Source of the DNA: Macrostomum hystrix
Taxonomy: Eukaryota > Animalia > Platyhelminthes
Length of the DNA stretch: 64,000 nt
Assembly (NCBI GenBank): GCA_950097015.1
Contig: CATNEN010000011.1
Location: 3,968,001-4,032,000, forward strand
Direction of reading: 5' to 3'
The notes beneath the pieces are model-generated. The model made no database searches, was not told the DNA's origin, and saw only the letters and a list, made by a program, of their open reading frames with translations. Shown one piece after another: positions 6,001-43,200 of the stretch. The translations under genes and the position numbers were made by a program. Position 1 is the stretch's first letter, and each line of letters begins with the position of its first letter.

Positions 6001-9000
6001 TGACATGTTACAGCTCAGTCTAACATGTTACAGCTCAGTCTAACATGTTACAGCTCTGTCTAACACGTTACAGCTCTGTATAGCATGTTACAGCTCAGTC
6101 TGACATGTTACAGCTCAGTCTAATACGTTACAGCTCTGTCTAACATGTTACAGCTCTGTCTAACACGTTACAGCTCTGTATAGCATGTTACAGCTCAGTC
6201 TGACATGTTACAGCTCTGTCTAACACGTTACAGCTCTGTATAGCATGTTACAGCTCAGTCTGACATGTTACAGCTCAGTCTAATACGTTACAGCTCTGTC
6301 TAACATGTTACAGCTCTGTCTAACACGTTACAGCTCTGTATAGCATGTTACAGCTCAGTCTGACATGTTACAGCTCTGTCTAACACGTTACAGCTCTGTA
6401 TAGCATGTTACAGCTCAGTCTGACATGTTACAGCTCAGTCTAATACGTTACAGCTCTGTCTAACATGTTACAGCTCTGTCTAACACGTTACAGCTCTGTC
6501 TAACATGTTACAGCTCTGTCTAACACGTTACAGCTCTGTATAGCATGTTGCAGCTCAGTCTGACATGTTACAGCTCAGTCTAATACGTTACAGCTCTGTC
6601 TAACATGTTACAGCTCTGTCTAACACGTTACAGCTCTGTATAGCATGTTACAGCTCAGTCTGACATGTTACAGCTCTGTCTAACACGTTACAGCTCTGTA
6701 TAGCATGTTACAGCTCAGTCTGACATGTTACAGCTCTGTCTAACACGTTACAGCTCTGTCTAACACGTTACAGCTCTGTCTAACACGTTACAGCTCTGTA
6801 TAGCATGTTACAGCTCAGTCTGACATGTTACAGCTCAGTCTAATACGTTACAGCTCTGTCTAACATGTTACAGCTCTGTCTAACACGTTACAGCTCTGTA
6901 TAGCATGTTACAGCTCAGTCTGACATGTTACAGCTCTGTCTAACACGTTACAGCTCTGTATAGCATGTTACAGCTCAGTCTGACATGTTACAGCTCAGTC
7001 TAATACGTTACAGCTCTGTCTAACATGTTACAGCTCTGTCTAACACGTTACAGCTCTGTATAGCATGTTACAGCTCAGTCTGACATGTTACAGCTCTGTC
7101 TAACACGTTACAGCTCTGTCTAACACGTTACAGCTCTGTCTAACACGTTACAGCTCTGTATAGCATGTTACAGCTCAGTCTGACATGTTACAGCTCTGTC
7201 TAACACGTTACAGCTCTGTATAGCATGTTACAGCTCAGTCTGACATGTTACAGCTCAGTCTAATACGTTACAGCTCTGTCTAACATGTTACAGCTCTGTC
7301 TAACACGTTACAGCTCTGTCTAACATGTTACAGCTCTGTCTAACACGTTACAGCTCTGTATAGCATGTTACAGCTCAGTCTGACATGTTACAGCTCAGTC
7401 TAATACGTTACAGCTCTGTCTAACATGTTACAGCTCTGTCTAACACGTTACAGCTCTGTATAGCATGTTACAGCTCAGTCTGACATGTTACAGCTCTGTC
7501 TAACACGTTACAGCTCTGTATAGCATGTTACAGCTCAGTCTGACATGTTACAGCTCAGTCTAATACGTTACAGCTCTGTCTAACATGTTACAGCTCTGTC
7601 TAACACGTTACAGCTCTGTATAGCATGTTACAGCTCAGTCTGACATGTTACAGCTCTGTCTAACACGTTACAGCTCTGTCTAACACGTTACAGCTCTGTC
7701 TAACACGTTACAGCTCTGTATAGCATGTTACAGCTCAGTCTGACATGTTACAGCTCTGTCTAACACGTTACAGCTCTGTATAGCATGTTACAGCTCAGTC
7801 TGACATGTTACAGCTCTGTCTAACACGTTACAGCTCTGTCTAACACGTTACAGCTCTGTCTAACACGTTACAGCTCTGTATAGCATGTTACAGCTCAGTC
7901 TGACATGTTACAGCTCAGTCTAATACGTTACAGCTCTGTCTAACATGTTACAGCTCTGTCTAACACGTTACAGCTCTGTATAGCATGTTACAGCTCAGTC
8001 TGACATGTTACAGCTCTGTCTAACACGTTACAGCTCTGTATAGCATGTTACAGCTCAGTCTGACATGTTACAGCTCAGTCTAATACGTTACAGCTCTGTC
8101 TAACATGTTACAGCTCTGTCTAACACGTTACAGCTCTGTATAGCATGTTACAGCTCAGTCTGACATGTTACAGCTCTGTCTAACACGTTACAGCTCAGTC
8201 TGACACGTTACAGCGCAGTCTGACATGTCTAGAACTTTTTCTTTTGCAGAGTTCTCTTCTACCCTCGAGCGAGGATTTGCACCTGAGCCACCTGCCGATG
8301 TCCCAAGCGTTCGCACGCAGCCTCCTGCTGATGTGCTACTCGCAAGGTGTCCGGGTCGGTTTCTGCCATAGCAACATTGACGAAGCTGGCGATATTCAGC
8401 CGCTGATGGACGACCTGCGGGAGCTGCGGCCGACCCTGCTGTTCACACGGCCAGCTGTGCTCAAGCTGCTCAAGATTTGGTCCGCTGAGTCCGCCAATTC
8501 TCAGGTGGGATTTTTCTGGAAGAATACATGGGATAATAACAACAATAATATTGGCTCCTTTAATGCGGACACAGACTGGAACCTGACCCACCCACCGCTT
8601 CCAGGGCTGCTTCAAAGGACTGATCTACCGTTTAGTCGTGGCTAAACAAGTCGCTGCCAGAGCTTCCAGAACGCCGACATGTTCAACCGACGGCTTCTGG
8701 AATCAGCTGGCTTTTGAGCATCTTCGAGCAGCTACGGGGGGCCGGCTTAGGCTGACGCTGGTGGTCGCCGACCCGTTGCTAGCCGGACTGAGGAGATTCG
8801 TTGAGCTCGCCCTGAACTGCCCGGTCCTGCCTGTCTATGGCCTGGTCGAGACCGCCGGACCGTGCATTGTGAACGGCCGGCTGCTGGGCCATCTGGAAGT
8901 CAGGCTCAACGGAATCCCATCGACTCAAACCAACGACTCCGCCAGCTTAGTGCCGACTCCCAAGGAGCTCTGGCTGCGTGGTCCAGCCGTGGCCACAGTC

Positions 9001-12000
9001 AGCGACATTCACGAAGACGAAGACGACCGCCAGGCGGATGTTGTTGTCAATTTTAACAACGACGACGAGGATGACGTATACAGCTCGTGGTTGGACTCCG
9101 GCGACATCGCCGAGTGGACGGCGGAGGGCGGCCTGGCGATTGTGGACCGGAGGAAGCACATGTTCCGCCTGGCCTGCGGAGAATGGATCTCGCCTGACAA
9201 GCTGGAACAGGTGCTGTCGTGTGCTGTTTGTAGCTTTCTTCTGTCTAACACTGTGGTGACACATAACTCATCTGTTAGACAAGAGAACTCACCTGTTAGA
9301 CAAGAGAACTCACCTGTTAGACAAGAGAACTCACCTGTTAGACATGAGAACTCACCTGTTAGACAAGAGAACTCATCTGTTAGACAAGAGAACTCATCTG
9401 CTAGACAAGATAACTCACCTGTTAGACATGAGAACTCACCTGTTAGACAAGAGAACTCACCTGTTAGACAAGAGAACTCACCTGCTAGACAAGAGAACTG
9501 AAAAATCGTTCAATTAAGTTTGTTAAAAACTGTTTAATTCGATCTGGTGAAACAGCTAGCCCAGTTTAATCAGACTTCAAATTAACAGTTTTATATCTTC
9601 CCACTAGCTTGAAAAATTTTTATTATTAAACAAGAAAATAATACATTTAAGTGCGAGACACGCATGTTGACTCACCACCGATGAGTATAAAAAACAGACC
9701 CAACCCTGGCTTGCTCAAGGATGTGTTCTTTAAGTCAACTAACTGTCAGTAAAGCATGCCTATCCTTACAATAAAATGTAAATATAGCTTTGAGCACGAT
9801 TCTTCGAGTAGCAAGCTGCACTAGAGTCTAGCATTACTTTCCCTAGCGCAACGAAGTACCCAAAATACGAGCTAAGGACAGGTATTTTGTTTATTTATCT
9901 TGCGTTTTTTTACCTCGCCGTCTTTTAATGTACTAAAGTATTAAAGTATTAAAGTACTAAAGTACTGAAGTACTAAAGTACTGAAGTACTAAAGTACTGA
10001 AGTACTAAAGTACTGAAGTACTAAAGTACTGAAGTACTAAAGTACTGAAGTACTAAAGTACTGAAGTACAAAAGTACTGAAGTACAAAAGTACTGAAGTA
10101 CTAAAGTAATGAAGTACTAAAGTACTGAAGTACTAAAGTACGTACGAAAGTATTTGATATTTTGCAAGCTCATGTTAGCATAAAACTTACAAGTACACAT
10201 CAGTAGTATAAACTACCAGAACTCTGCCTCAGAGATATCCGCGGAAATTCCGTGGAGCACTACTGTTTAAACATAGGCCAGAGGTCGGCAAACTAAGTAG
10301 CTAGCGGACCAAAGCGAGAATCTAAAAGACGACAGCGGGCCACATTGACTGTAGAAATAGGAGACATGGGAGAATTGAGACACGGGGCTGAAACAAGGGC
10401 GCTATGATCGCACACTAGTGCCCCACGGAATTTCAAATGCAATTTTTGATTGCATCACGCCTCAGGTGTACTCTACCTGCAGTTTGGTTCGCCAGGCCTA
10501 CGTTGATGGCGACTCAATGGAGACCTTCGCCTTGGCAGTGGTGGTGCCTCATCGCGACGCTGCTCTGGCATGGCTCAACGCCAGGCGACATGCCGGCGGG
10601 TCTGGCCCTGGCAGTAGTCGTCAGCTGACTGCCCAGCAGGCGGCGACAAACTTTGAGGCGGTCTGCAGCAGCGAGGACTTCAAAGCCGCTGTGCTTCGGC
10701 AGATGCTGGATTCTGGACGAGCCGTTAGACTGAGGCCTTTTGAGCAGGTGAGCGGCTGCTGACAGTTAACTGACATGACTGACAGCTTGCTAATTAGCTG
10801 ACATGACTGACAGCTGACAGTGAACTGACATAACTGACAGCTTACTGATTAACTGAAATGACTGACAGCTTACTGATTAACTGACATGACTGACAGCTTA
10901 CTGATTAACTGACATGACTGACAGCTTACTGATTAACTGACATGACTGACAGCTTACTGATTAACTGACATGACTGACAGCTTACTGATTAACTGACATG
11001 ACTGACAGCTGACAGTTAAATGACATGACTAACAGCTTGCTAATTAACTGACATGACTGACAGCTGACAGTTAACTGACATGACTGACAGCTTAATAATT
11101 AACTGACATGACTGACAGCTTGCTAATTAACTGACATGACTGACAGCTTGCTAATTAACTGACATGACTGACAACTTAATAACTAACTGACATGACTGAC
11201 AGCTGACAGTTAACTGACATGACTGACAGCTTACTGATTAACTGACATGACTGACAGCTTAATAATTAACTGACATGACTGACAGCTTGCTAATTAACTG
11301 ACATGACTGACAGCTTACTAATTAACTGACATGACTGACAGCTTACTAATTAACTGACATGACTGATAGCTTACTAATTAACTGACATGACTGACAACTT
11401 AATAATTAACTGACATGACTGACAGCTGACAGTTAACTGACATGACTGACAGCTTACTGATTAACTGACATGACTGACAGCTTAATAATTAACTGACATG
11501 ACTGACAGCTTGCTAATTAACTGACATGACTGACAGCTTACTGATTAACTGACATGACTGACAGCTTACTGATTAACTGACATGACTGACAGCTTGCTAA
11601 TTAACTGACATGACTGACAGCTTACTGATTAACTGACATGACTGACAGCTTACTAATTAACTGACATGACTGACAGCTTACTGATTAACTGACATGACTG
11701 ACAGCTTACTGATTAACTGACATGACTGACAGCTTACTAATTAACTGACATGACTGACAGCTTGCTAATTAACTGACATGACTGACAGCTTACTGATTAA
11801 CTGACATGACTGACAGCTTACTAATTAACTGACATGACTGACAGCTTGCTAATTAACTGACATGACTGACAACTTAATAATTAACTGACATGACTGACAG
11901 CTGACAGTTAACTGACATGACTGACAGCTTACTGATTAACTGACATGACTGACAGCTTAATAATTAACTGACATGACTGACAGCTTGCTAATTAACTGAC

Positions 12001-29105: not shown

Positions 29106-30224
29106 GAATCGAGCTCAGGGATATTAGTGCGAGAGACAACGCGTTAACCGCTCTGCCAGCGACCCCCTGTTCTTGCATGCCAGCATAAGCTGGGTTGAAA
29201 GCTTTGTGCTATTATAACAATTACTTTTAGTTATTGCGAGTGGTACAGAACTGGAGAAAGAGTATATGGCTACTTAAGCACCGGCGTCGGTTCACTAATA
29301 GCAAAGTTAGTTTAAGTATGAGTTACAACAATTTAATGTACATGTGCACGTAGTTCATTAGTTTAACTTTTTAAAACTCTTTCTATTCGCGGCCCCGCTA
29401 TACGCTTAAAACACAAAAAATATTCGAGTGAAAACCTTTTGCAAAAACCTTTTCGTCTGCTAAGACACGAAATTGCATGCAAACCCACTGCATGGTAGAT
29501 AACATATCTTAAAGCTTCGACAAAAATGCAACAATTTTTTTTTGTTGCTTTTAGAGAGGTTGTATACGAGTATTTAATAGAATTAATAGTTAGCCCGTAA
29601 ATATGTGCAAACCCTAGAGCTATAGGAAGAGCCTGTTACAGGCTTCAATCTCAAATCCGTTGACATCAGCTCAGGCTATCGCCATGTGACATTCAATGTA
29701 CATTATAATACAAATATATGAAGAGTGGTGTCCCATCATGATTGCAACTCATGTTTTCTCAGAAACAAGATTATGCAAATCAAGATCAGAGAGCCGCTAT
29801 GCTAATTCTGAGCAATCAGGATTTACCCGCTCAGGCATTTAGATTAATTTTGATCATTTATTTGAGCCACAACTGCATGCATACGAGAGCAACTAGACGG
29901 AACAGTTTCGGGATCTCATATTAATCCCTGGAGGGATAAAATGTAAATATATACTTTGGGTCCTTGAGAGCAATAAAAGCTTGAGCTATGCAGTCGGAGC
30001 TGGTCCGGTCTCTTTGATCGTGGCGCCCAGTTGTCGTTAGAACCAATGAACTGGAACAGACCAGACTCCAAAATTTGCTAATAATCAATTTACAGCTCGC
30101 TCAAACAGATCAGAAGTTTCTCGAGACGCGCATTATAAAAAGCGATTCATTTGGAAAAACCTGGTAAGTTGAGAAACAGGAATTCAGCCTTAGCACTGCA
30201 GCCACAGAACGGATTCTATTGAGA

Positions 30225-31898
30225 ATGACATACTGTACTGTCTTGCAAATTTTGCTTCTGACTTTTTTCGCCCAAGCCAACTGCCTTGACAATGTCGCTG
30301 TTAGACACTCGGGAGATCTCATCGTTCCTGAATGCTATTCAAAAGCTGACAACTGCGACAGATATCAAGACTGCTGCGACAGCGCTCGAACTTTTGATCC
30401 TAGAGATGCTGGCATCACTTGCGAGAGTGTATTGCTGTGTACCAATGGGACATGCGACAGTCTGCGAGGTCAGTACTCGGTGTACATGGTCACGAAGTGC
30501 CCAGCCAACAGCAATCAAAGCTCTTTGGTGCATTCTCGCTGCCAGTCAGGCCTTGGAGACATCAACGTCGGTGATAAAACCAATTTGCCGGTTTTTTCCA
30601 ACCACACAGGTTTGCTATATCGCAATGCTTTTTGTGCAATGTGCCACGGCATGACCGTCGAGCTCCAAACAGCTCAGCTGGTATTGTTCTGCAACGGTTC
30701 AGACACTTCCAGCTGCAAATCTGTGGCCATAGTCGAGTCTCAGCAGGCCCACGTGTGCTACCCGAACCTCGCCGATGCCAACGCCTGTAAGGACGAGTAT
30801 CCGTCTCTGACGGAGACCTGCTCACGGGCGCCGACAAGGTATGAAGTCTGCCTGGGCATCGCTTATCGCAATTCCTATTGCCGCATGTGTCAGCTGGGCT
30901 GGTATGCGCCCTGGTGCGAGAAAACCGAGTATGCGCTGTGGAACCTGCGAGAACGCCTGGACTACGGCTTGCTAGGTGTTTACGTCGGCTTTCGCGATCT
31001 AGACGCTAACAGGCCTGGTCGGGGCTTCAGTTCACGTGACAACGGCACATCATCAGGCGGAGGATGGCGGGTGTCTGTCAGCCTCTACGCCACTCACACG
31101 GCATCGATAACGGCTCTGCTAATGCTGCTCGCTGTGTACCTCAGTGTGCCGAGCCTGCGCAATCGCCCCGGCCTGTGTCTTTGCTGCCACGCCGTCTGCG
31201 TTCTAGTCTGGGAGGTCCTGGCCATTGTTACTCGAGCAATGCAGCCAACTCAGACAGCCTGTTTGAGTCTCTTGCTGCTCAGCTACTTCTGTTTATGCTC
31301 AATCTTCTCCTGGGCTTCCGTATTTGGCTTTGACCTGCTTCGCAGTCTGGCCTCAAATCTGCCGTCCCGCGGCCCGTCCAAATGGCTGATGCTGCTGGTC
31401 TGGTTGGCCCCCGCAATTCTCACGGCGTGCGTCGGTTTCCTGCACTTCAGACTCGGACTCCTGGACCTGACCGTGTGCCAGTTCGCGCCTTGCCACAAGT
31501 GGCTCATGCTGGCGCTGTCGCTGACTCCTCTGGGATTGGCTTTGACCGTCAATTTATCGGTAGCAGCCGCAGTCTGCATCATCCTGCGCAGAAGAACTCG
31601 GACAGCTCAGCGACTGAAGTCGGCAACTGGCGCCAACGCGCGCCGAATGGTTGGAGCCGCTGTGCGCGTCTCAGTGGCCGCCGGGGCTGCCTGGCTGCCG
31701 CAGTTCTGCCTCGCAAACCTTCCTCCGTCTGACGCTATCAATCAGCACCTGGCTGCCATTGTCGGCGAGCACCTGGCGGCTCTGCACGGAGTCCTGCTGA
31801 CTGTTTGCTTCTGCTGTGCCAGTCGTCCAGTGCGTCAGCTGATTTTGAGACAGCAGCCGCAGCGGCTGCAGCAGCCGCAGCGACCGAGGGCTTCTTAG
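30225..31898 (+). CDS. Intronless Methuselah-like/adhesion-class 7TM GPCR with Cys-rich ectodomain
   Basis: Signal-peptide-like N-terminus (MTYCTVLQILLLTFFAQANC) and a somatomedin-B-like C..C...DCC motif. Repeated LYRNAFCAMCHG / AYRNSYCRMCQ modules are followed by seven hydrophobic segments (LRNRPG, WASVFGFDL, W.AP). The first ATG is at 30225; the ORF track starts at TTG 30219. Confidence 0.85.
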   Translation: MTYCTVLQILLLTFFAQANCLDNVAVRHSGDLIVPECYSKADNCDRYQDCCDSARTFDPRDAGITCESVLLCTNGTCDSLRGQYSVYMVTKCPANSNQSSLVHSRCQSGLGDINVGDKTNLPVFSNHTGLLYRNAFCAMCHGMTVELQTAQLVLFCNGSDTSSCKSVAIVESQQAHVCYPNLADANACKDEYPSLTETCSRAPTRYEVCLGIAYRNSYCRMCQLGWYAPWCEKTEYALWNLRERLDYGLLGVYVGFRDLDANRPGRGFSSRDNGTSSGGGWRVSVSLYATHTASITALLMLLAVYLSVPSLRNRPGLCLCCHAVCVLVWEVLAIVTRAMQPTQTACLSLLLLSYFCLCSIFSWASVFGFDLLRSLASNLPSRGPSKWLMLLVWLAPAILTACVGFLHFRLGLLDLTVCQFAPCHKWLMLALSLTPLGLALTVNLSVAAAVCIILRRRTRTAQRLKSATGANARRMVGAAVRVSVAAGAAWLPQFCLANLPPSDAINQHLAAIVGEHLAALHGVLLTVCFCCASRPVRQLILRQQPQRLQQPQRPRAS

Positions 31899-33019: not shown

Positions 33020-33960
33020 CTACATCTTGAAGAACTTGACAGACAGTTTCTTGGAATCTGGAAGCTCTTTGTAAACCTCCAGGAGCAGGCTGGGCAGGTT
33101 CATGCTGAGCTTAATGCTGCCCACGTGGTCATGGTTCAGCATCACTGAAAGTTGCAATTGCGAAAGTTACAAGAATAGATGCAAAAGGCAGGAGCAAGTG
33201 CTAGTTACTCACGGGGAAAGCTCTCCATTAGAATGTCATCGCCTCTTGCGATTCTACCATCGAGATTGACAATCGCTTGGCCAAGGTCCATATAGAAGTC
33301 GCTGTCGGGGTCCGATGGCTCGCACACCACTGTGAATGTAGTCTCAATGTGCTCGCTTTGCAGAAGCAATGCGGCCAGCAACTTGCGCTTCTCATAGCTG
33401 CTGTCAAAACTGTACTCATATAGTTTCTTAAAGTTGTAGCTCAGGCTGAACTCCTCCGGTCGCGATCGGCCCGGTGTGGGAGTTGGCAAAGAGTTTGGCG
33501 TCTCAGTTTCCTGGAACGGAAAGCCTGGCAGCTGGAAGGACACGTAGCACTTGGTATCGTCCAAGTCTAGATTCTTCAGGGTCTGACAGGTTTCGTTAAA
33601 ACGCACGCTGAATATCTCGACTGTGCAGGTTTCCACAACGGTCCGAACCGAATTTTTTTGTGGATTGCTGGCCTCAATCAAGCGACACATCAAAAAATTG
33701 TCTACCGGTTTTTGAAGCTTCTCGCGGCACAGAGGGCAGCGGGAGCCAGGATTTATCGCAGTAGCCCGATAGCATGCCCGACACAGTGTGTGGTGATTTT
33801 TGCACACAAAGCATGGGTCTTTGAACACTTCCAAGCATACTGGACAGGTGAGATCAATGTCTTCGCGAGCTGAAGTTCGCAGAATAAAAATTCTGGATTT
33901 TAGTAGCGCCAAACTAATGAGGGAATTAATCCTAGCTAACAAATTGTTAGCTTCGACCAA
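33020..33960 (-). CDS. RING finger protein fused to an RPGRIP1/RPGRIP1L C-terminal RID-type C2 domain; at least 2 exons
   Basis: RING: CPVC..CKNHHTLCRAC..CPLC. Then ETPNSLPTP..YNF..KRKLLAALL..FTVVCEP..DLGQAIVNL..GDDIL. A phase-1 intron (33212-33145; c|gtgagt ... tttcag|tg) leads to LMLNHDHVGSIKLSMNLPSLLLEVYKE...KM* ending at 33020. The 5' end is uncertain: there is a likely acceptor near 33872 and the upstream exon was not identified. Confidence 0.8.
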
Positions 33961-34348: not shown

Positions 34349-34625
34349 GGAGTTGTTGCCAAGTGGTTGCAGCGTTAGACTCACGGCTTGAAGGTCAGGG
34401 GTTCGATTCCTGACTTCATCACGGGAACAATTTGTGTCTTTTAGCAAGACTATATTGACTCTGCATTCCTGTAGTTCACCCAGCTGTTAAATGTGTACCA
34501 GCTTTAGCTGGGGTAATTGAGGGTGGGTTTGGCGTCCCCAGTCCATGGACTGAAAAGACATACGCAGTCTTCAAATTTTGCGCACAAGAGCTGCGGCTGT
34601 GCTGACTGCTGTATCTGGCCCAATA
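34349..34625 (+). mobile_element. tRNA-derived SINE, copy 3
   Basis: gttgccaagtggtt...actcacggcttgaaggtcaggggttcgattcc head, the same body and the palindrome cagtccatggactg. Confidence 0.85.
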
Positions 34626-35383
34626 GAGCTCCTGCATGTCAACGTACGCTGACGCCCAACAAAAGACACCCATTGAAACGGCAATATAAAGAGCACTCAC
34701 GAGGTGTTAAGTTCATCTGTTTACTGATGGCGCTTCTTACCTGCAGCTTACTGCTCACAAACTTTAAGTTTTCGCTGTTCAAAAAGAGGTACTAGCTTAA
34801 ATGCAAGGTCTTCTATTTGATATTTTAACCAAATTATTCTCTGGAACACAGACTTATAATACATACCCAGGTCCATTGCTGCAGAGATTGCTAACTTTTT
34901 TACACAAGTTCGAGCGTACACAAAAACTTATCCGCAAAAATTGACGATTGCATGTTTAGCCGAGAAAGTCTGGCCATGATAACAAGCGCACAGCAGCACT
35001 GTGTGAGTTCTGACTAGAAGTCTTCGTCACTCTCTTCGAAGAGTACCATTTTATAGCTGTAAAATTGCTCATGTATAGTTTTGGCTATGCATGCACACTG
35101 TCTTTTTTATTTAATTTAAATTTTTTAGTTTGGAGAGGTAAAATTAAAGGTATATGGCTGCGGCTTGTGTTAAATGGCTGCGAGCGTAGACCAGGGCCAT
35201 CAGATCAGGGGTTGGCTACGTCGGCTACTAAAATATATTGAGGCCACTTCATAAATAACTGCTTGGAATCGAATGGGGACAAACATAGGAGCTAAGTGTC
35301 GCTTATTTAATATCTATGCTCGTTACTATAGCAACATCTACTTTGCCTTGTCTTTCAGAATTAAATATACAATCTTATAATAA

Positions 35384-40216: not shown

Positions 40217-43200
40217 ATGAAGCAACTGTTAGAGTCAATCAACGAAGCTGCTGGCAGTACCAATGATGAGTCAGTTAAAGAAGATGAGGATGATGATTGT
40301 CCTCAGCTTGTTAGCCTGTCACAGCCATCTGCTGCTGCTTCACTTGCTAAGCAACTAAAAGATTCACCCCCTGTACCTGTGACTGTGATAACAGGTTACC
40401 TAGGTGCTGGCAAGACTACTTTGTTAAATTTCATTCTCACTGCGCAGCATGGTAGACGAATCGCTGTCATTATGAACGAATTTGGCGACTCAGCCGCTGT
40501 GGAAGCCGCTCTTACTGTTGCCGAGGACAACACTGACGATGGTAGGCTGACTGTTGATCTTAATCCCATCTAAAGTTGTTTGTTTGTTGATCTTGATCCC
40601 ATCTAGAGTTGTTTGTTTGTTGATCTTAATCCCATCTAGAGTTGTTTGTTCGTTGATCGTGATCCCATCTAGAGTTGTTTGTTTGTTGATCTTAATCCCA
40701 TCTAGAGTTGTTGTTTGTTAATTTTAATCCCATCCAGAATTGTTGTTTGTTGATCTTAATCCCATCTAGAGTTGTTTGTTTGTTGATCTTGATTCCATCT
40801 AGAATTGTTGTTTGTTGATCTTGATTCCATCTAGAGTTTTTGTTTATTTATCTTGATCCGATCTAGAATCTTAATATTTAGCCTTTATATCTAGATATCA
40901 TTAGGCTTAAGATTATTCTGCAGATACAAAATATAGTTCAGTCGGGAATCGAACCCCCGACCATGAGTGATAAGTCAGACGCTTTAATCACTAGGCTAGC
41001 ACTTGGCTAATTCCCTTCGAAACTGATCTGAAGATTGTTCTTTGGAGATTTGGACTTACTCTAGCGCCTAAATATTAAAATAAAAATATTAAAAAATCGA
41101 TATTTTGTAGGCGACAGCGAAAGCGGCGGTCGTCGCCGCTACGAAGAATGGCTAGAGCTTGGCAACGGCTGTCTCTGCTGCTCCCTGAAGCACGCCGGCG
41201 TTGCCGCTATCGAACGACTGATGGAACGCCGGGGTCGCTTCGATCACGTGCTGCTGGAGACCACGGGATTGGCCGAGCCCGGTCCCATTGCCGCGCTGTT
41301 TTGGTTGGATGAGCAGCTGGAGAGTTTGATCTGCCTGGACGGCTTCGTTACCGTGGTGAGTCAGCAGCTGATTGTTTTGCTAGATTTGTCCCTTGGCGTT
41401 TAGAGTTTTTATATAGTACCCTCGGAATGTTTTTAGGAATGCCTACCCTGAAGTTTATGGAAAAGTGCACCTTAAATTTAATCATCAAAGTACATTTCAG
41501 GTTCTTTAGGAAAGCACACCTGCAGTTCACTAGGAAAGTACATCTGAAGTTCATTAGGAAAGTACATCTGAAGTTTATTAGGAAAGTACATCTGAAGTTT
41601 ATTAGGAAAGTACACCTGAAGTTCACTAGGAAAGTACATCTAAAGTTTATTAGGAAAGTACACCTGAAGTTCATTAGGAAAGTACATCTGAAGTTCACTA
41701 GGAAAGTACATCTGAAGTTCATTAGGAAAGTACATCTGAAGTTTATTAGAAAAGTACACCTGAAGTTCACTAGGAAAGTACACCTGAAGTTCACTAGGAA
41801 AGTACATCTGAAGTTCATTAGGAAAGTACATCTGAAGTTTATTAGGAAAGTACATCTGAAGTTTATTAGGAAAGTACATCTGAAGTTTATTAGGAAAGTA
41901 CACCTGAAGTTCATTAGGAAATTATATCTGAAGTTTATTAGGAAAGTACATCTGAAGTTTATTAGAAAAGTACACCTGAAGTTCACTAGGAAAGTACACC
42001 TGAAGTTCATTAGGAAAGTACATCTGAAGTTTATTAGGAAAGTACACCTGAAGTTCACTAGGAAAGTACATCTAAAGTTTATTAGGAAAGTACACCTGAA
42101 GTTCATTAGGAAAGTACATCTGAAGTTCACTAGGAAAGTACATCTGAAGTTCACTCGGAAAGTACGTCTGAAGTTTATTAGGAAAGTACATCTAAAGTTT
42201 ATTAGGAAAGTACACCTGAAGTTCATTAGGAAAGTACATCTGAAGTTCACTAGGAAAGTACATCTGAAGTTCACTCGGAAAGTACATCTGAAGTTTATTA
42301 GGAAATTATATCTGAAGTTCACTAAGAAAGTACACCTGAAGTTCACTAGGAAAGTACATCTGAAGTTTATTAGGAAAGTACATCTGAAGTTCATTAGGAA
42401 AGTACATCTGAAGTTTATTAGGAAAGTACATCTGAAGTTCATTAGGAAAGTACATCTGAAGTTTATTAGGAAAGCACACCTGAAGTTTATTAGTAAAAGC
42501 ATACCTTGAAGTTAATTATCAAAGTACATCTCAGGTTCTTTAGGAAAGTACATATGAAATTCATTAGGAAAGTAACATCTGAAGTTTATAAGAAAATTAC
42601 ACCCTGAAGGTAATGAAAAAACACACCCTGAAGTAATTTAGGAAAACACACCCTGAAGTTAATTTGGAAAGTGCACTCTCAAGATCCAAGTTGATTAGAA
42701 ATTCATACTTTAAATTATGATATGCTCGTCCTAAAGTTTTAAAAAAATGCATGCTCTTTTATAACGTGAATAAGCAATGCATGAACTGTTAATTGTTCAG
42801 ATGCCGATAGTCTAAATTCCAAGAGAATATGTTTCGCAATTCGCAGGTGGACAGTTTAAACGCCAATAGGCAATGCAGTCAAATCGAATGGCAACGTCAA
42901 GTAGCATGCGCTGACACAGTACTACTGAGCAAAACTGATCTACTAACTGACCAAGGCTCTGACAGTGTTGAAGCTCTGGTTAGGCAAATCAACTCCACCT
43001 GTCGCATTTTACCTAGTCAACGAGGCGTTGCACCTTTAGACGCCATCCTAGGCTTAGAGGCCTATCAGAACTCTGCGGCAATGTCTGAGAAACTGCCTAG
43101 CCTTGCCAACAATAGCGACGCCCACCTCAGCAAGCTTGGCACCGATGTTGGCACTGTGGCCATCGACTTCGATATAAATGCGAAGTTTTGGCGCGAAAAA

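Follow-up and report, generated by a model that had tools for sequence, protein, structure and literature searches.

A putative RING-RID fusion gene of Macrostomum hystrix, joining a TRIM-like RING finger to a partial copy of RPGRIP1L

A locus of the flatworm Macrostomum hystrix joins a RING finger, in frame and within a single exon, directly to a RID domain of the RPGRIP1L type. The locus lies on the minus strand of the window, by which we mean the whole stretch of 64,000 nucleotides that was analysed, taken from contig 11 of the assembly (C11), the contig that also carries RPGRIP1L. We are highly confident that this direct RING-RID fusion gene is a real chimeric locus of RING-family and RPGRIP1L origin. 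The explanation that we consider best overall, and towards which we lean slightly, is that of a structurally intact, lineage-specific chimeric gene encoding a RING E3 with a near-canonical RID.

Structure of the fusion gene and its two domains

The fusion gene consists of two coding exons separated by one intron, and all searches and folds of it were run exon by exon, with exons A and B unjoined. An open frame at 33205-33960 (-) holds the RING and the RID without a break. Exon A (33213-33869, -), the main coding exon, was delimited from the sequence and by alignment to the parent gene, and it codes for the RING, then a short linker and then ~140 residues from the N-terminal end of the RID. Its start is probably at 33869, after an acceptor in phase 1 (ttcag/CT, the slash marking the splice site), rather than at 33960, and its 3' end is a phase 1 donor (C/GTGAGT at 33213/33212). 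A GT-AG intron of 68 nt (33145-33212, -), also placed by alignment to the parent gene, has its acceptor at 33145/33144 (TTTCAG/TG) and is joined in phase 1 to exon B (33020-33144, -). This last exon, recognised by its DNA identity to the parent and by a RID HMM, supplies the C-terminal strand and helix of the RID; it encodes MLNHDHVGSIKLSMNLPSLLLEVYKELP...KM*, ending ...VKFFKM and then TAG, with the stop codon at 33020-33022. No clear AATAAA could be read by eye just 3' of the stop codon. The predicted product has ~265 residues, plus a putative short N-terminus. The claim of a preliminary description that RING and RID share one exon is borne out by the uninterrupted frame and by the Pfam RPGR1_C match described below.

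The RING finger (33727-33846, -) is a C3HC4 domain of the TRIM type, as identified by Pfam, PDB sequence matches, Foldseek and identity to paralogues. Its motif in frame is CPVC-x10-CKNHHTLCRAC-x11-CPLC, and all eight Cys/His zinc ligands are present in cross-brace spacing (C39, C42, C53, H56/57, C60, C63, C75 and C78 in open-frame numbering). The domain scores 22.4 bits against a cut-off of 21 with Pfam zf-C3HC4, and at 29.4 bits it barely reaches the cut-off of 29.3 for Sina_RING. Its PDB sequence matches are to TRIM21, and an AlphaFold model of exon A alone (33214-33867, -; 21-row alignment; mean pLDDT 81.7) contains a RING fold that Foldseek superimposes on the TRIM21 RING 6fga with an rmsd of 1.3 A and a probability of 1.00. 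The RING had earlier been called SINA-like, a label that does not hold. In contrast to SINA/SIAH proteins, the window gene gave no Pfam match to SIAH zinc fingers or to a Sina/TRAF-like domain at E up to 1, its paralogues are TRIM-like in layout, and its best structural RING match is TRIM21. On the evidence of sequence and model, the window RING is best classed as TRIM-like, not SINA-like. The complete TRIM/RBCC layout is absent, as no remnant of a B-box or coiled coil after the RING was found anywhere in the window, nor any remnant of a B-box, coiled coil or old RID exons 3' of the stop at E < 1.

The N-terminal part of the RID (33213-33635, -; RPGR1_C, a type II C2 fold) was assigned by DNA identity to the parent, Pfam and Foldseek. 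With exon A alone, Pfam RPGR1_C (PF18111) matched residues 110-246 with an E of 1.3e-13 and 51.6 bits (cut-off 22.9), and a PDB sequence search returned 4qam_B, the RPGRIP1 RID, at E 1.6e-5. The top PDB match of the exon A model in Foldseek was again 4qam_B (E 4e-8, TM 0.61 on the target), with the beta-sandwich of a C2 domain, so that the fold check proposed earlier gave agreeing answers from Pfam and Foldseek; the motifs previously listed for the RID are all present. Exon B scores 43.8 bits on positions 142-183, the C-terminal end, of a Macrostomum RID HMM. The C-terminal ~180 residues of the window gene are thus a bona fide RID with the same intron position as in RPGRIP1L/RPGRIP1. The difference lies in what precedes it, since the window RID sits behind a RING and not behind coiled coils, C2-C2_1 and a central C2. 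The N-terminal coiled coil, the C2-C2_1 and the central C2 are all absent from the window gene, which shares only the RID with the RPGRIP1/RPGRIP1L scaffolds.

Other features of the window were noted in passing. Directly beyond the 3' end of the fusion gene and on the other strand, at 30219-31898 (+), a single exon stays open for 559 aa; its N-terminal part is Cys-rich, and it carries a 7TM domain of the secretin family (Pfam 7tm_2, E 6.8e-8). A GTPase of the CobW/ZNG1 type (Pfam cobW, E 4e-15) has its first coding exon at 40217-40573 (+). At 41348-42509 there is a ~1.1-kb array of 24-nt units, open on both strands (FLINFRCT... and KVHLKFIR... repeats), which is probably a minisatellite and not a gene.

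Origin from RPGRIP1L and a TRIM-like RING family

A six-frame search of the whole genome (220,453,370 bases, 42 contigs) with PF18111 found only two places, the window gene and C11:4307291-4307713. The second forms the 3' end of a long gene whose upstream part has an acidic stretch and C2-like sequence, and the M. lignano counterpart of that gene (P0002/PAA67348) carries C2-C2_1 (PF11618), C2 and RPGR1_C. On this evidence, the long gene at about C11:4.307 Mb onward is taken to be the only RPGRIP1L of the M. hystrix genome. The suggestion to look for a separate full-length RPGRIP1L was therefore answered by a gene that shares contig and strand with the window gene and lies at a distance of 306 kb.

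The window RID and the RPGRIP1L RID are 85% identical in amino acids. At the DNA level, the RID part of exon A is 86.5% identical to the penultimate exon of RPGRIP1L (C11:4307295-4307715), and exon B is 88.9% identical to the last exon (C11:4307018-4307143). Homology to the parent sets in sharply at 33635, partway through its penultimate exon, and runs as far as the stop codon, before which the window RID is one codon longer than its parent. The intron is at the same site and in the same phase in both genes, at 68 nt versus 151 nt, and the two intron sequences are no longer alignable. Divergence by the Nei-Gojobori method is Ks 0.42 and Ka 0.082, and in an ML tree the window RID and M. hystrix RPGRIP1L are sisters (88/85), joined next by M. 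lignano RPGRIP1L (89/97). The RID part is thus read as a DNA-level partial duplicate of the last 1.5 exons of RPGRIP1L, in agreement with the partial duplication proposed at the outset; the identity and the retained intron both support it.

Several other routes were considered and rejected. Retention of the parent intron implies copying at the DNA level and rules out a retrocopy. The fusion junction of ~30 nt (33636-33664, -), bounded by blastn and MAFFT and with detected homology to neither parent, lies inside an exon for both parents, which rules out intron-mediated exon shuffling, the other origin that the preliminary description had offered. A larger segmental duplication encompassing both parents is also excluded, since a comparison of the window with C11:4.280-4.322 Mb gave the RID in two blocks of ~0.55 kb, the RING in 0.2 kb and otherwise only dispersed repeats. 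A SINE-like repeat of ~255 bp (34352-34610, +), in the presumed first intron or upstream of the fusion gene, had been credited with a possible part in its origin; this was dismissed because the element is dispersed and high-copy, with >3,600 first-look matches genome-wide at 82-84% identity, and is not locus-specific. ARAGORN found no tRNA in it.

The RING segment has ~10 paralogues in M. hystrix, nearly all at C11 4.229-4.303 Mb, directly beside RPGRIP1L. The closest to the window RING is exon 1 of a gene that we call RING-P, at C11:4302878-4303082 (+), with 70% amino-acid and 74% DNA identity; all zinc ligands are kept, as are the family-specific RING residues (DPCFVCKNHHTLCRAC), and Nei-Gojobori divergence is Ks 1.66 and Ka 0.21. 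RING-P itself (C11:4302872-4305198, +; exons at L013:6872-7228, 7785-8630 and 9014-9199) is the tail-to-tail neighbour of RPGRIP1L. The RING Ks of 1.66 against the RID Ks of 0.42 argues for an old RING lineage with a later gain of a fresh RID, and the window gene is accordingly read from these divergences as a chimera of two ages, its RING part much older than its RID part.

Relatives in M. lignano are proteins of 295-446 aa annotated as 'RING-type domain-containing proteins', in which the RING is followed by a Cys/His B-box-like motif and then by a long predicted helical region; the B-box call in the paralogues is weak (Pfam ANCHR-like_BBOX, E 0.08). In P0005 (A0A1I8GNY8) and P0007 (A0A1I8GQ13) of M. 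lignano, the C-terminal domain is colinear with the RID, and M. hystrix has counterparts with such a RID-like tail in RING-P and in a P0007-like gene in L019. In these longer family members the tail escapes Pfam. A Macrostomum RID profile, for which only M. lignano proteins annotated RPGR1_C were used, gave 58 bits for P0005, 35 for P0007, 35 for RING-P exon 2 and 20 for RING-P exon 3, against 5.8 bits for the best of 1000 shuffles; the short members without the tail gave no score on it. A pan-metazoan RID profile gave colinear but weaker matches, and hhalign of the tail against the RID returned a probability of 88% and E 3e-6. An intron after the motif ...G.DI..E.FP is common to RPGRIP1L, the window gene and the P0007-like gene, and the RID-like domain of RING-P is divided over two exons at the equivalent position. 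All Macrostomum RIDs, the long-branched RIDs of the RING family included, form one clade in the ML tree (100/100). An AlphaFold model of P0005, made from a 10-row alignment only, had a pLDDT of 52, and <50 over the RID-like domain, and the ESM Atlas held no model of P0005 and gave no feature match. From the profiles, hhalign and the intron site, we think it likely that the RING family had already captured a RID before the hystrix/lignano split. We therefore read two apparent RID captures by one RING family, an older one and a young one in the window gene. As the longer members already carry a RID-derived C-terminus, the combination of RING and RID would have been retained before in the Macrostomum lineage. 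Synteny in M. lignano is suggested by adjacent accessions and by contigs of shared size.

The following sequence of events would produce the present locus. An old member of the Macrostomum TRIM-like RING family would have stood at the present site, and ~0.6 kb of DNA would have been copied from the 3' end of RPGRIP1L, reaching from the middle of the penultimate exon through the intron and the last exon to the stop. The copied fragment would have been joined in frame directly behind the RING, where it would have taken the place of the B-box-like, coiled-coil and old RID-like regions usual in the family.

Further copies were observed in the same families. In L018 (C11:5119000-5124000), at about 1770-2473, there is a frameshifted partial copy of RING-P exon 2 (coiled coil and RID-like) with a deletion; its protein is nearly identical to the original at C11:4.3037 Mb, which marks it as a recent dead copy from the same family. 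The RING/B-box-like exons of L006 (C11:3829564-3832809) and L007 (C11:4294238-4297483), 465 kb apart, differ at 3/137 residues, which suggests that a segment of the TRIM-like cluster was recently duplicated to another place. Just upstream of the RING exon of RING-P, units of ~20 nt (gggattctagtt...) form a tandem array, at L004 1200-1385, or C11 about 4302580-4302765. In M. lignano, P0001 (A0A1I8J8Y7, 331 aa) has two tandem RIDs, and its accession adjoins that of the RPGRIP1L-like A0A1I8J8Y6. RID exons seem to have been duplicated often in Macrostomum.

Integrity, start codon and expression

The principal alternative to an intact gene is an unexpressed or decaying relic, that is, real chimeric DNA with no usable start or promoter, or a young pseudogene not yet disabled. 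We consider this unlikely, though it is the best placed of the rivals. The fusion gene has neither stops nor frameshifts in ~260 codons, and its donor and acceptor fit the consensus; for a relic, both splice sites and the whole frame would have stayed intact after a Ks of about 0.2 on the copy lineage. Pairwise Ka/Ks between the RID copy and RPGRIP1L is 0.20 (Fisher p 4e-10). When replacements were polarised with M. lignano outgroups, the copy had 15 derived ones and the parent 4, with 8 left ambiguous, and the omega of the copy lineage was about 0.4 (0.38-0.41), significantly below 1 (p about 0.001-0.002) if synonymous changes are assumed to be split equally. By these estimates, the copied RID still shows signs of purifying selection, which tells against a relic. 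The copy nevertheless evolves ~4-5x faster in amino-acid sequence than its RPGRIP1L parent, a pace that relaxed constraint in a decaying gene would also explain. The other fragment copy from the family, at C11:5.12 Mb, is clearly broken, and this too is in keeping with a relic.

The start of translation bears on the same question. No ATG lies in the open frame between the upstream stop and the RING, and the only convincing acceptor before the RING is in phase 1; together these mean that a 5' coding exon is needed. The Macrostomum spliced leader, which is 35 nt long and ends in AUG (PMC8629364), was considered as the source of the start and rejected, as there is no phase 0 acceptor and its AUG is out of frame. 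Both observations suit a relic. However, the intact RING-P, L006 and L008 have no ATG in the RING exon either, and their acceptor stands at the same place and in the same phase, so that a short upstream coding exon seems to be the norm in the family. A scan upstream for ATG...N/GT in phase 1 gave 52 candidates, of which the best, at 34701-34716 (-), would begin the protein as MNLTP-P-REDIDLTC... (ATG AAC TTA ACA CCT C/GTGAGT) and could be chance; a further candidate upstream exon is 34867-34876.

Neither a transcript nor a protein record of the fusion was found in the public sets searched, as a relic would have it, and the protein sets held nothing identical or nearly identical to the fusion product. 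The same search with RING-P was equally blank, and poor coverage of M. hystrix is therefore a more probable cause of the blank than a silent gene. Word-index protein searches with the fusion exon, RING-P exon 2 and P0005 returned only P0005 itself. Judged from sequence, we place the proposition that the fusion gene is expressed and functional as a RING+RID protein at an even balance.

According to a second alternative, translation would begin only behind the RING, at the Met of ...FLMCRLIEAS, the RING sequence would be 5'UTR, and the product would be a small free RID acting as a competitor or decoy for RPGRIP1L partners. We find this improbable. That Met is the first in-frame ATG in exon A, and small RID-only and RID-RID proteins exist in M. 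lignano (P0001, P0154), but the eight RING ligands and the family-specific residues have all been kept, and so has the acceptor before the RING, in place and phase, across the paralogues. An assembly artefact, in which RING and RPGRIP1L reads were chimerically joined, is scarcely credible: nothing specific speaks for it, and both parents lie on the same contig; against it, the RID copy differs from its parent at 14% of bases, in intron length (68 vs 151 nt) and by one extra codon, no paralogue is less than 26% divergent from the RING in DNA, a copy so unlike any existing locus is no mis-join of existing loci, and the assembly is a polished long-read one of 42 contigs (Wiberg et al. 2023, PMC10468722).

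Related architectures and proposed function

An intact RING-RID gene can be compared with several known systems. The members of the Macrostomum RING family (P0005, P0007, RING-P) resemble the window gene in a RING that is 42-70% identical, in the place and phase of the acceptor before the RING, in chromosomal neighbourhood and in a RID-derived C-terminal domain. They differ in having a B-box-like Cys/His motif and a helical region of ~150 residues between the RING and a RID-like domain that is old and diverged, whereas the window gene lacks both spacers and carries a RID of recent origin (Ks 0.42). In the mussel Mytilus edulis, at least five proteins of 241-255 aa (P0023 = CAG2186541.1; P0158-P0161), annotated 'RPGRIP1L', consist of one B-box followed by a full RPGR1_C. 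Like the window gene, they fuse a TRIM-type zinc module directly to a full RID in ~250 aa; unlike it, they carry a B-box instead of a RING, and their RIDs group with non-flatworm RIDs in the tree, which indicates an independent origin. A scan of 1.84 billion representative proteins, run without profiles, gave no protein outside flatworms with both a RING and a recognisable RID. The preliminary description had known of no RING-RID protein, and this stands for the direct fusion only; it fails for the looser arrangement, as A0A1I8GNY8, A0A1I8GQ13 and the M. hystrix paralogues combine a RING with a RID-like domain, and the Mytilus edulis proteins a B-box with a RID.

In TRIM5-CypA (TRIMCyp) of owl monkeys and macaques, an intronless cDNA was retroposed into or behind TRIM5, and jingwei is another young chimeric gene. 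The window gene shares with TRIMCyp the capture, by a RING/TRIM ligase, of a copy of another gene as a new target-binding domain, and its recurrence within one family. In contrast to TRIMCyp, the captured piece keeps its intron, as expected of DNA duplication or insertion, and the join lies inside an exon. The fusion is a lineage-specific variant of two known themes, young chimeric genes and TRIM-like ligases whose recognition domain has been exchanged.

RING domains recruit charged E2 enzymes. The RID of RPGRIP1, a C2 domain of type II, binds neither calcium nor lipid and serves instead as a protein-protein module that engages the RCC1-like domain of RPGR; the binding mode of RPGRIP1L is similar (Remans et al., PMC4519163). 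Most likely, to go by its domains, the fusion product is a minimal RING E3 aimed at RPGRIP1L partners, with start codon, ligase activity and target all putative. The RID would dock on one or more such partners, RPGR or another transition-zone protein, the RING would recruit an E2, and the partner would be ubiquitinated; alternatively, the product may compete with RPGRIP1L for its partner as a decoy. An M. hystrix RPGR orthologue was not among the two RCC1-repeat loci examined, which are HERC-like and NEK-like.

A wider reading is possible and is offered tentatively, with all its parts taken jointly. Macrostomum would possess a previously undescribed class of TRIM-like E3s that recognise their targets by a RID/C2 domain; the class would have been re-invented at least twice from the neighbouring RPGRIP1L, in an old capture now seen in M. 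lignano and M. hystrix and in the young window gene; its products would control how RPGR or other partners in the transition zone are turned over; and mussels would independently have reached a similar solution with their B-box-RID proteins.

The biological weight of the locus is limited pending proof of expression. As a case of new-gene birth it is clean and datable, by DNA-level domain capture between neighbouring genes, and with both parents and the product in one assembly it is comparable to TRIMCyp. To our knowledge, the RID has so far been described only at the C-terminal end of large scaffolds of the transition zone, in which it holds RPGR. A RID wired directly to a RING, with an older version in the same family, suggests that in some animals the RID is a portable recognition module for ubiquitination, and the fusion gene offers a natural handle on RID binding partners outside vertebrate photoreceptors.
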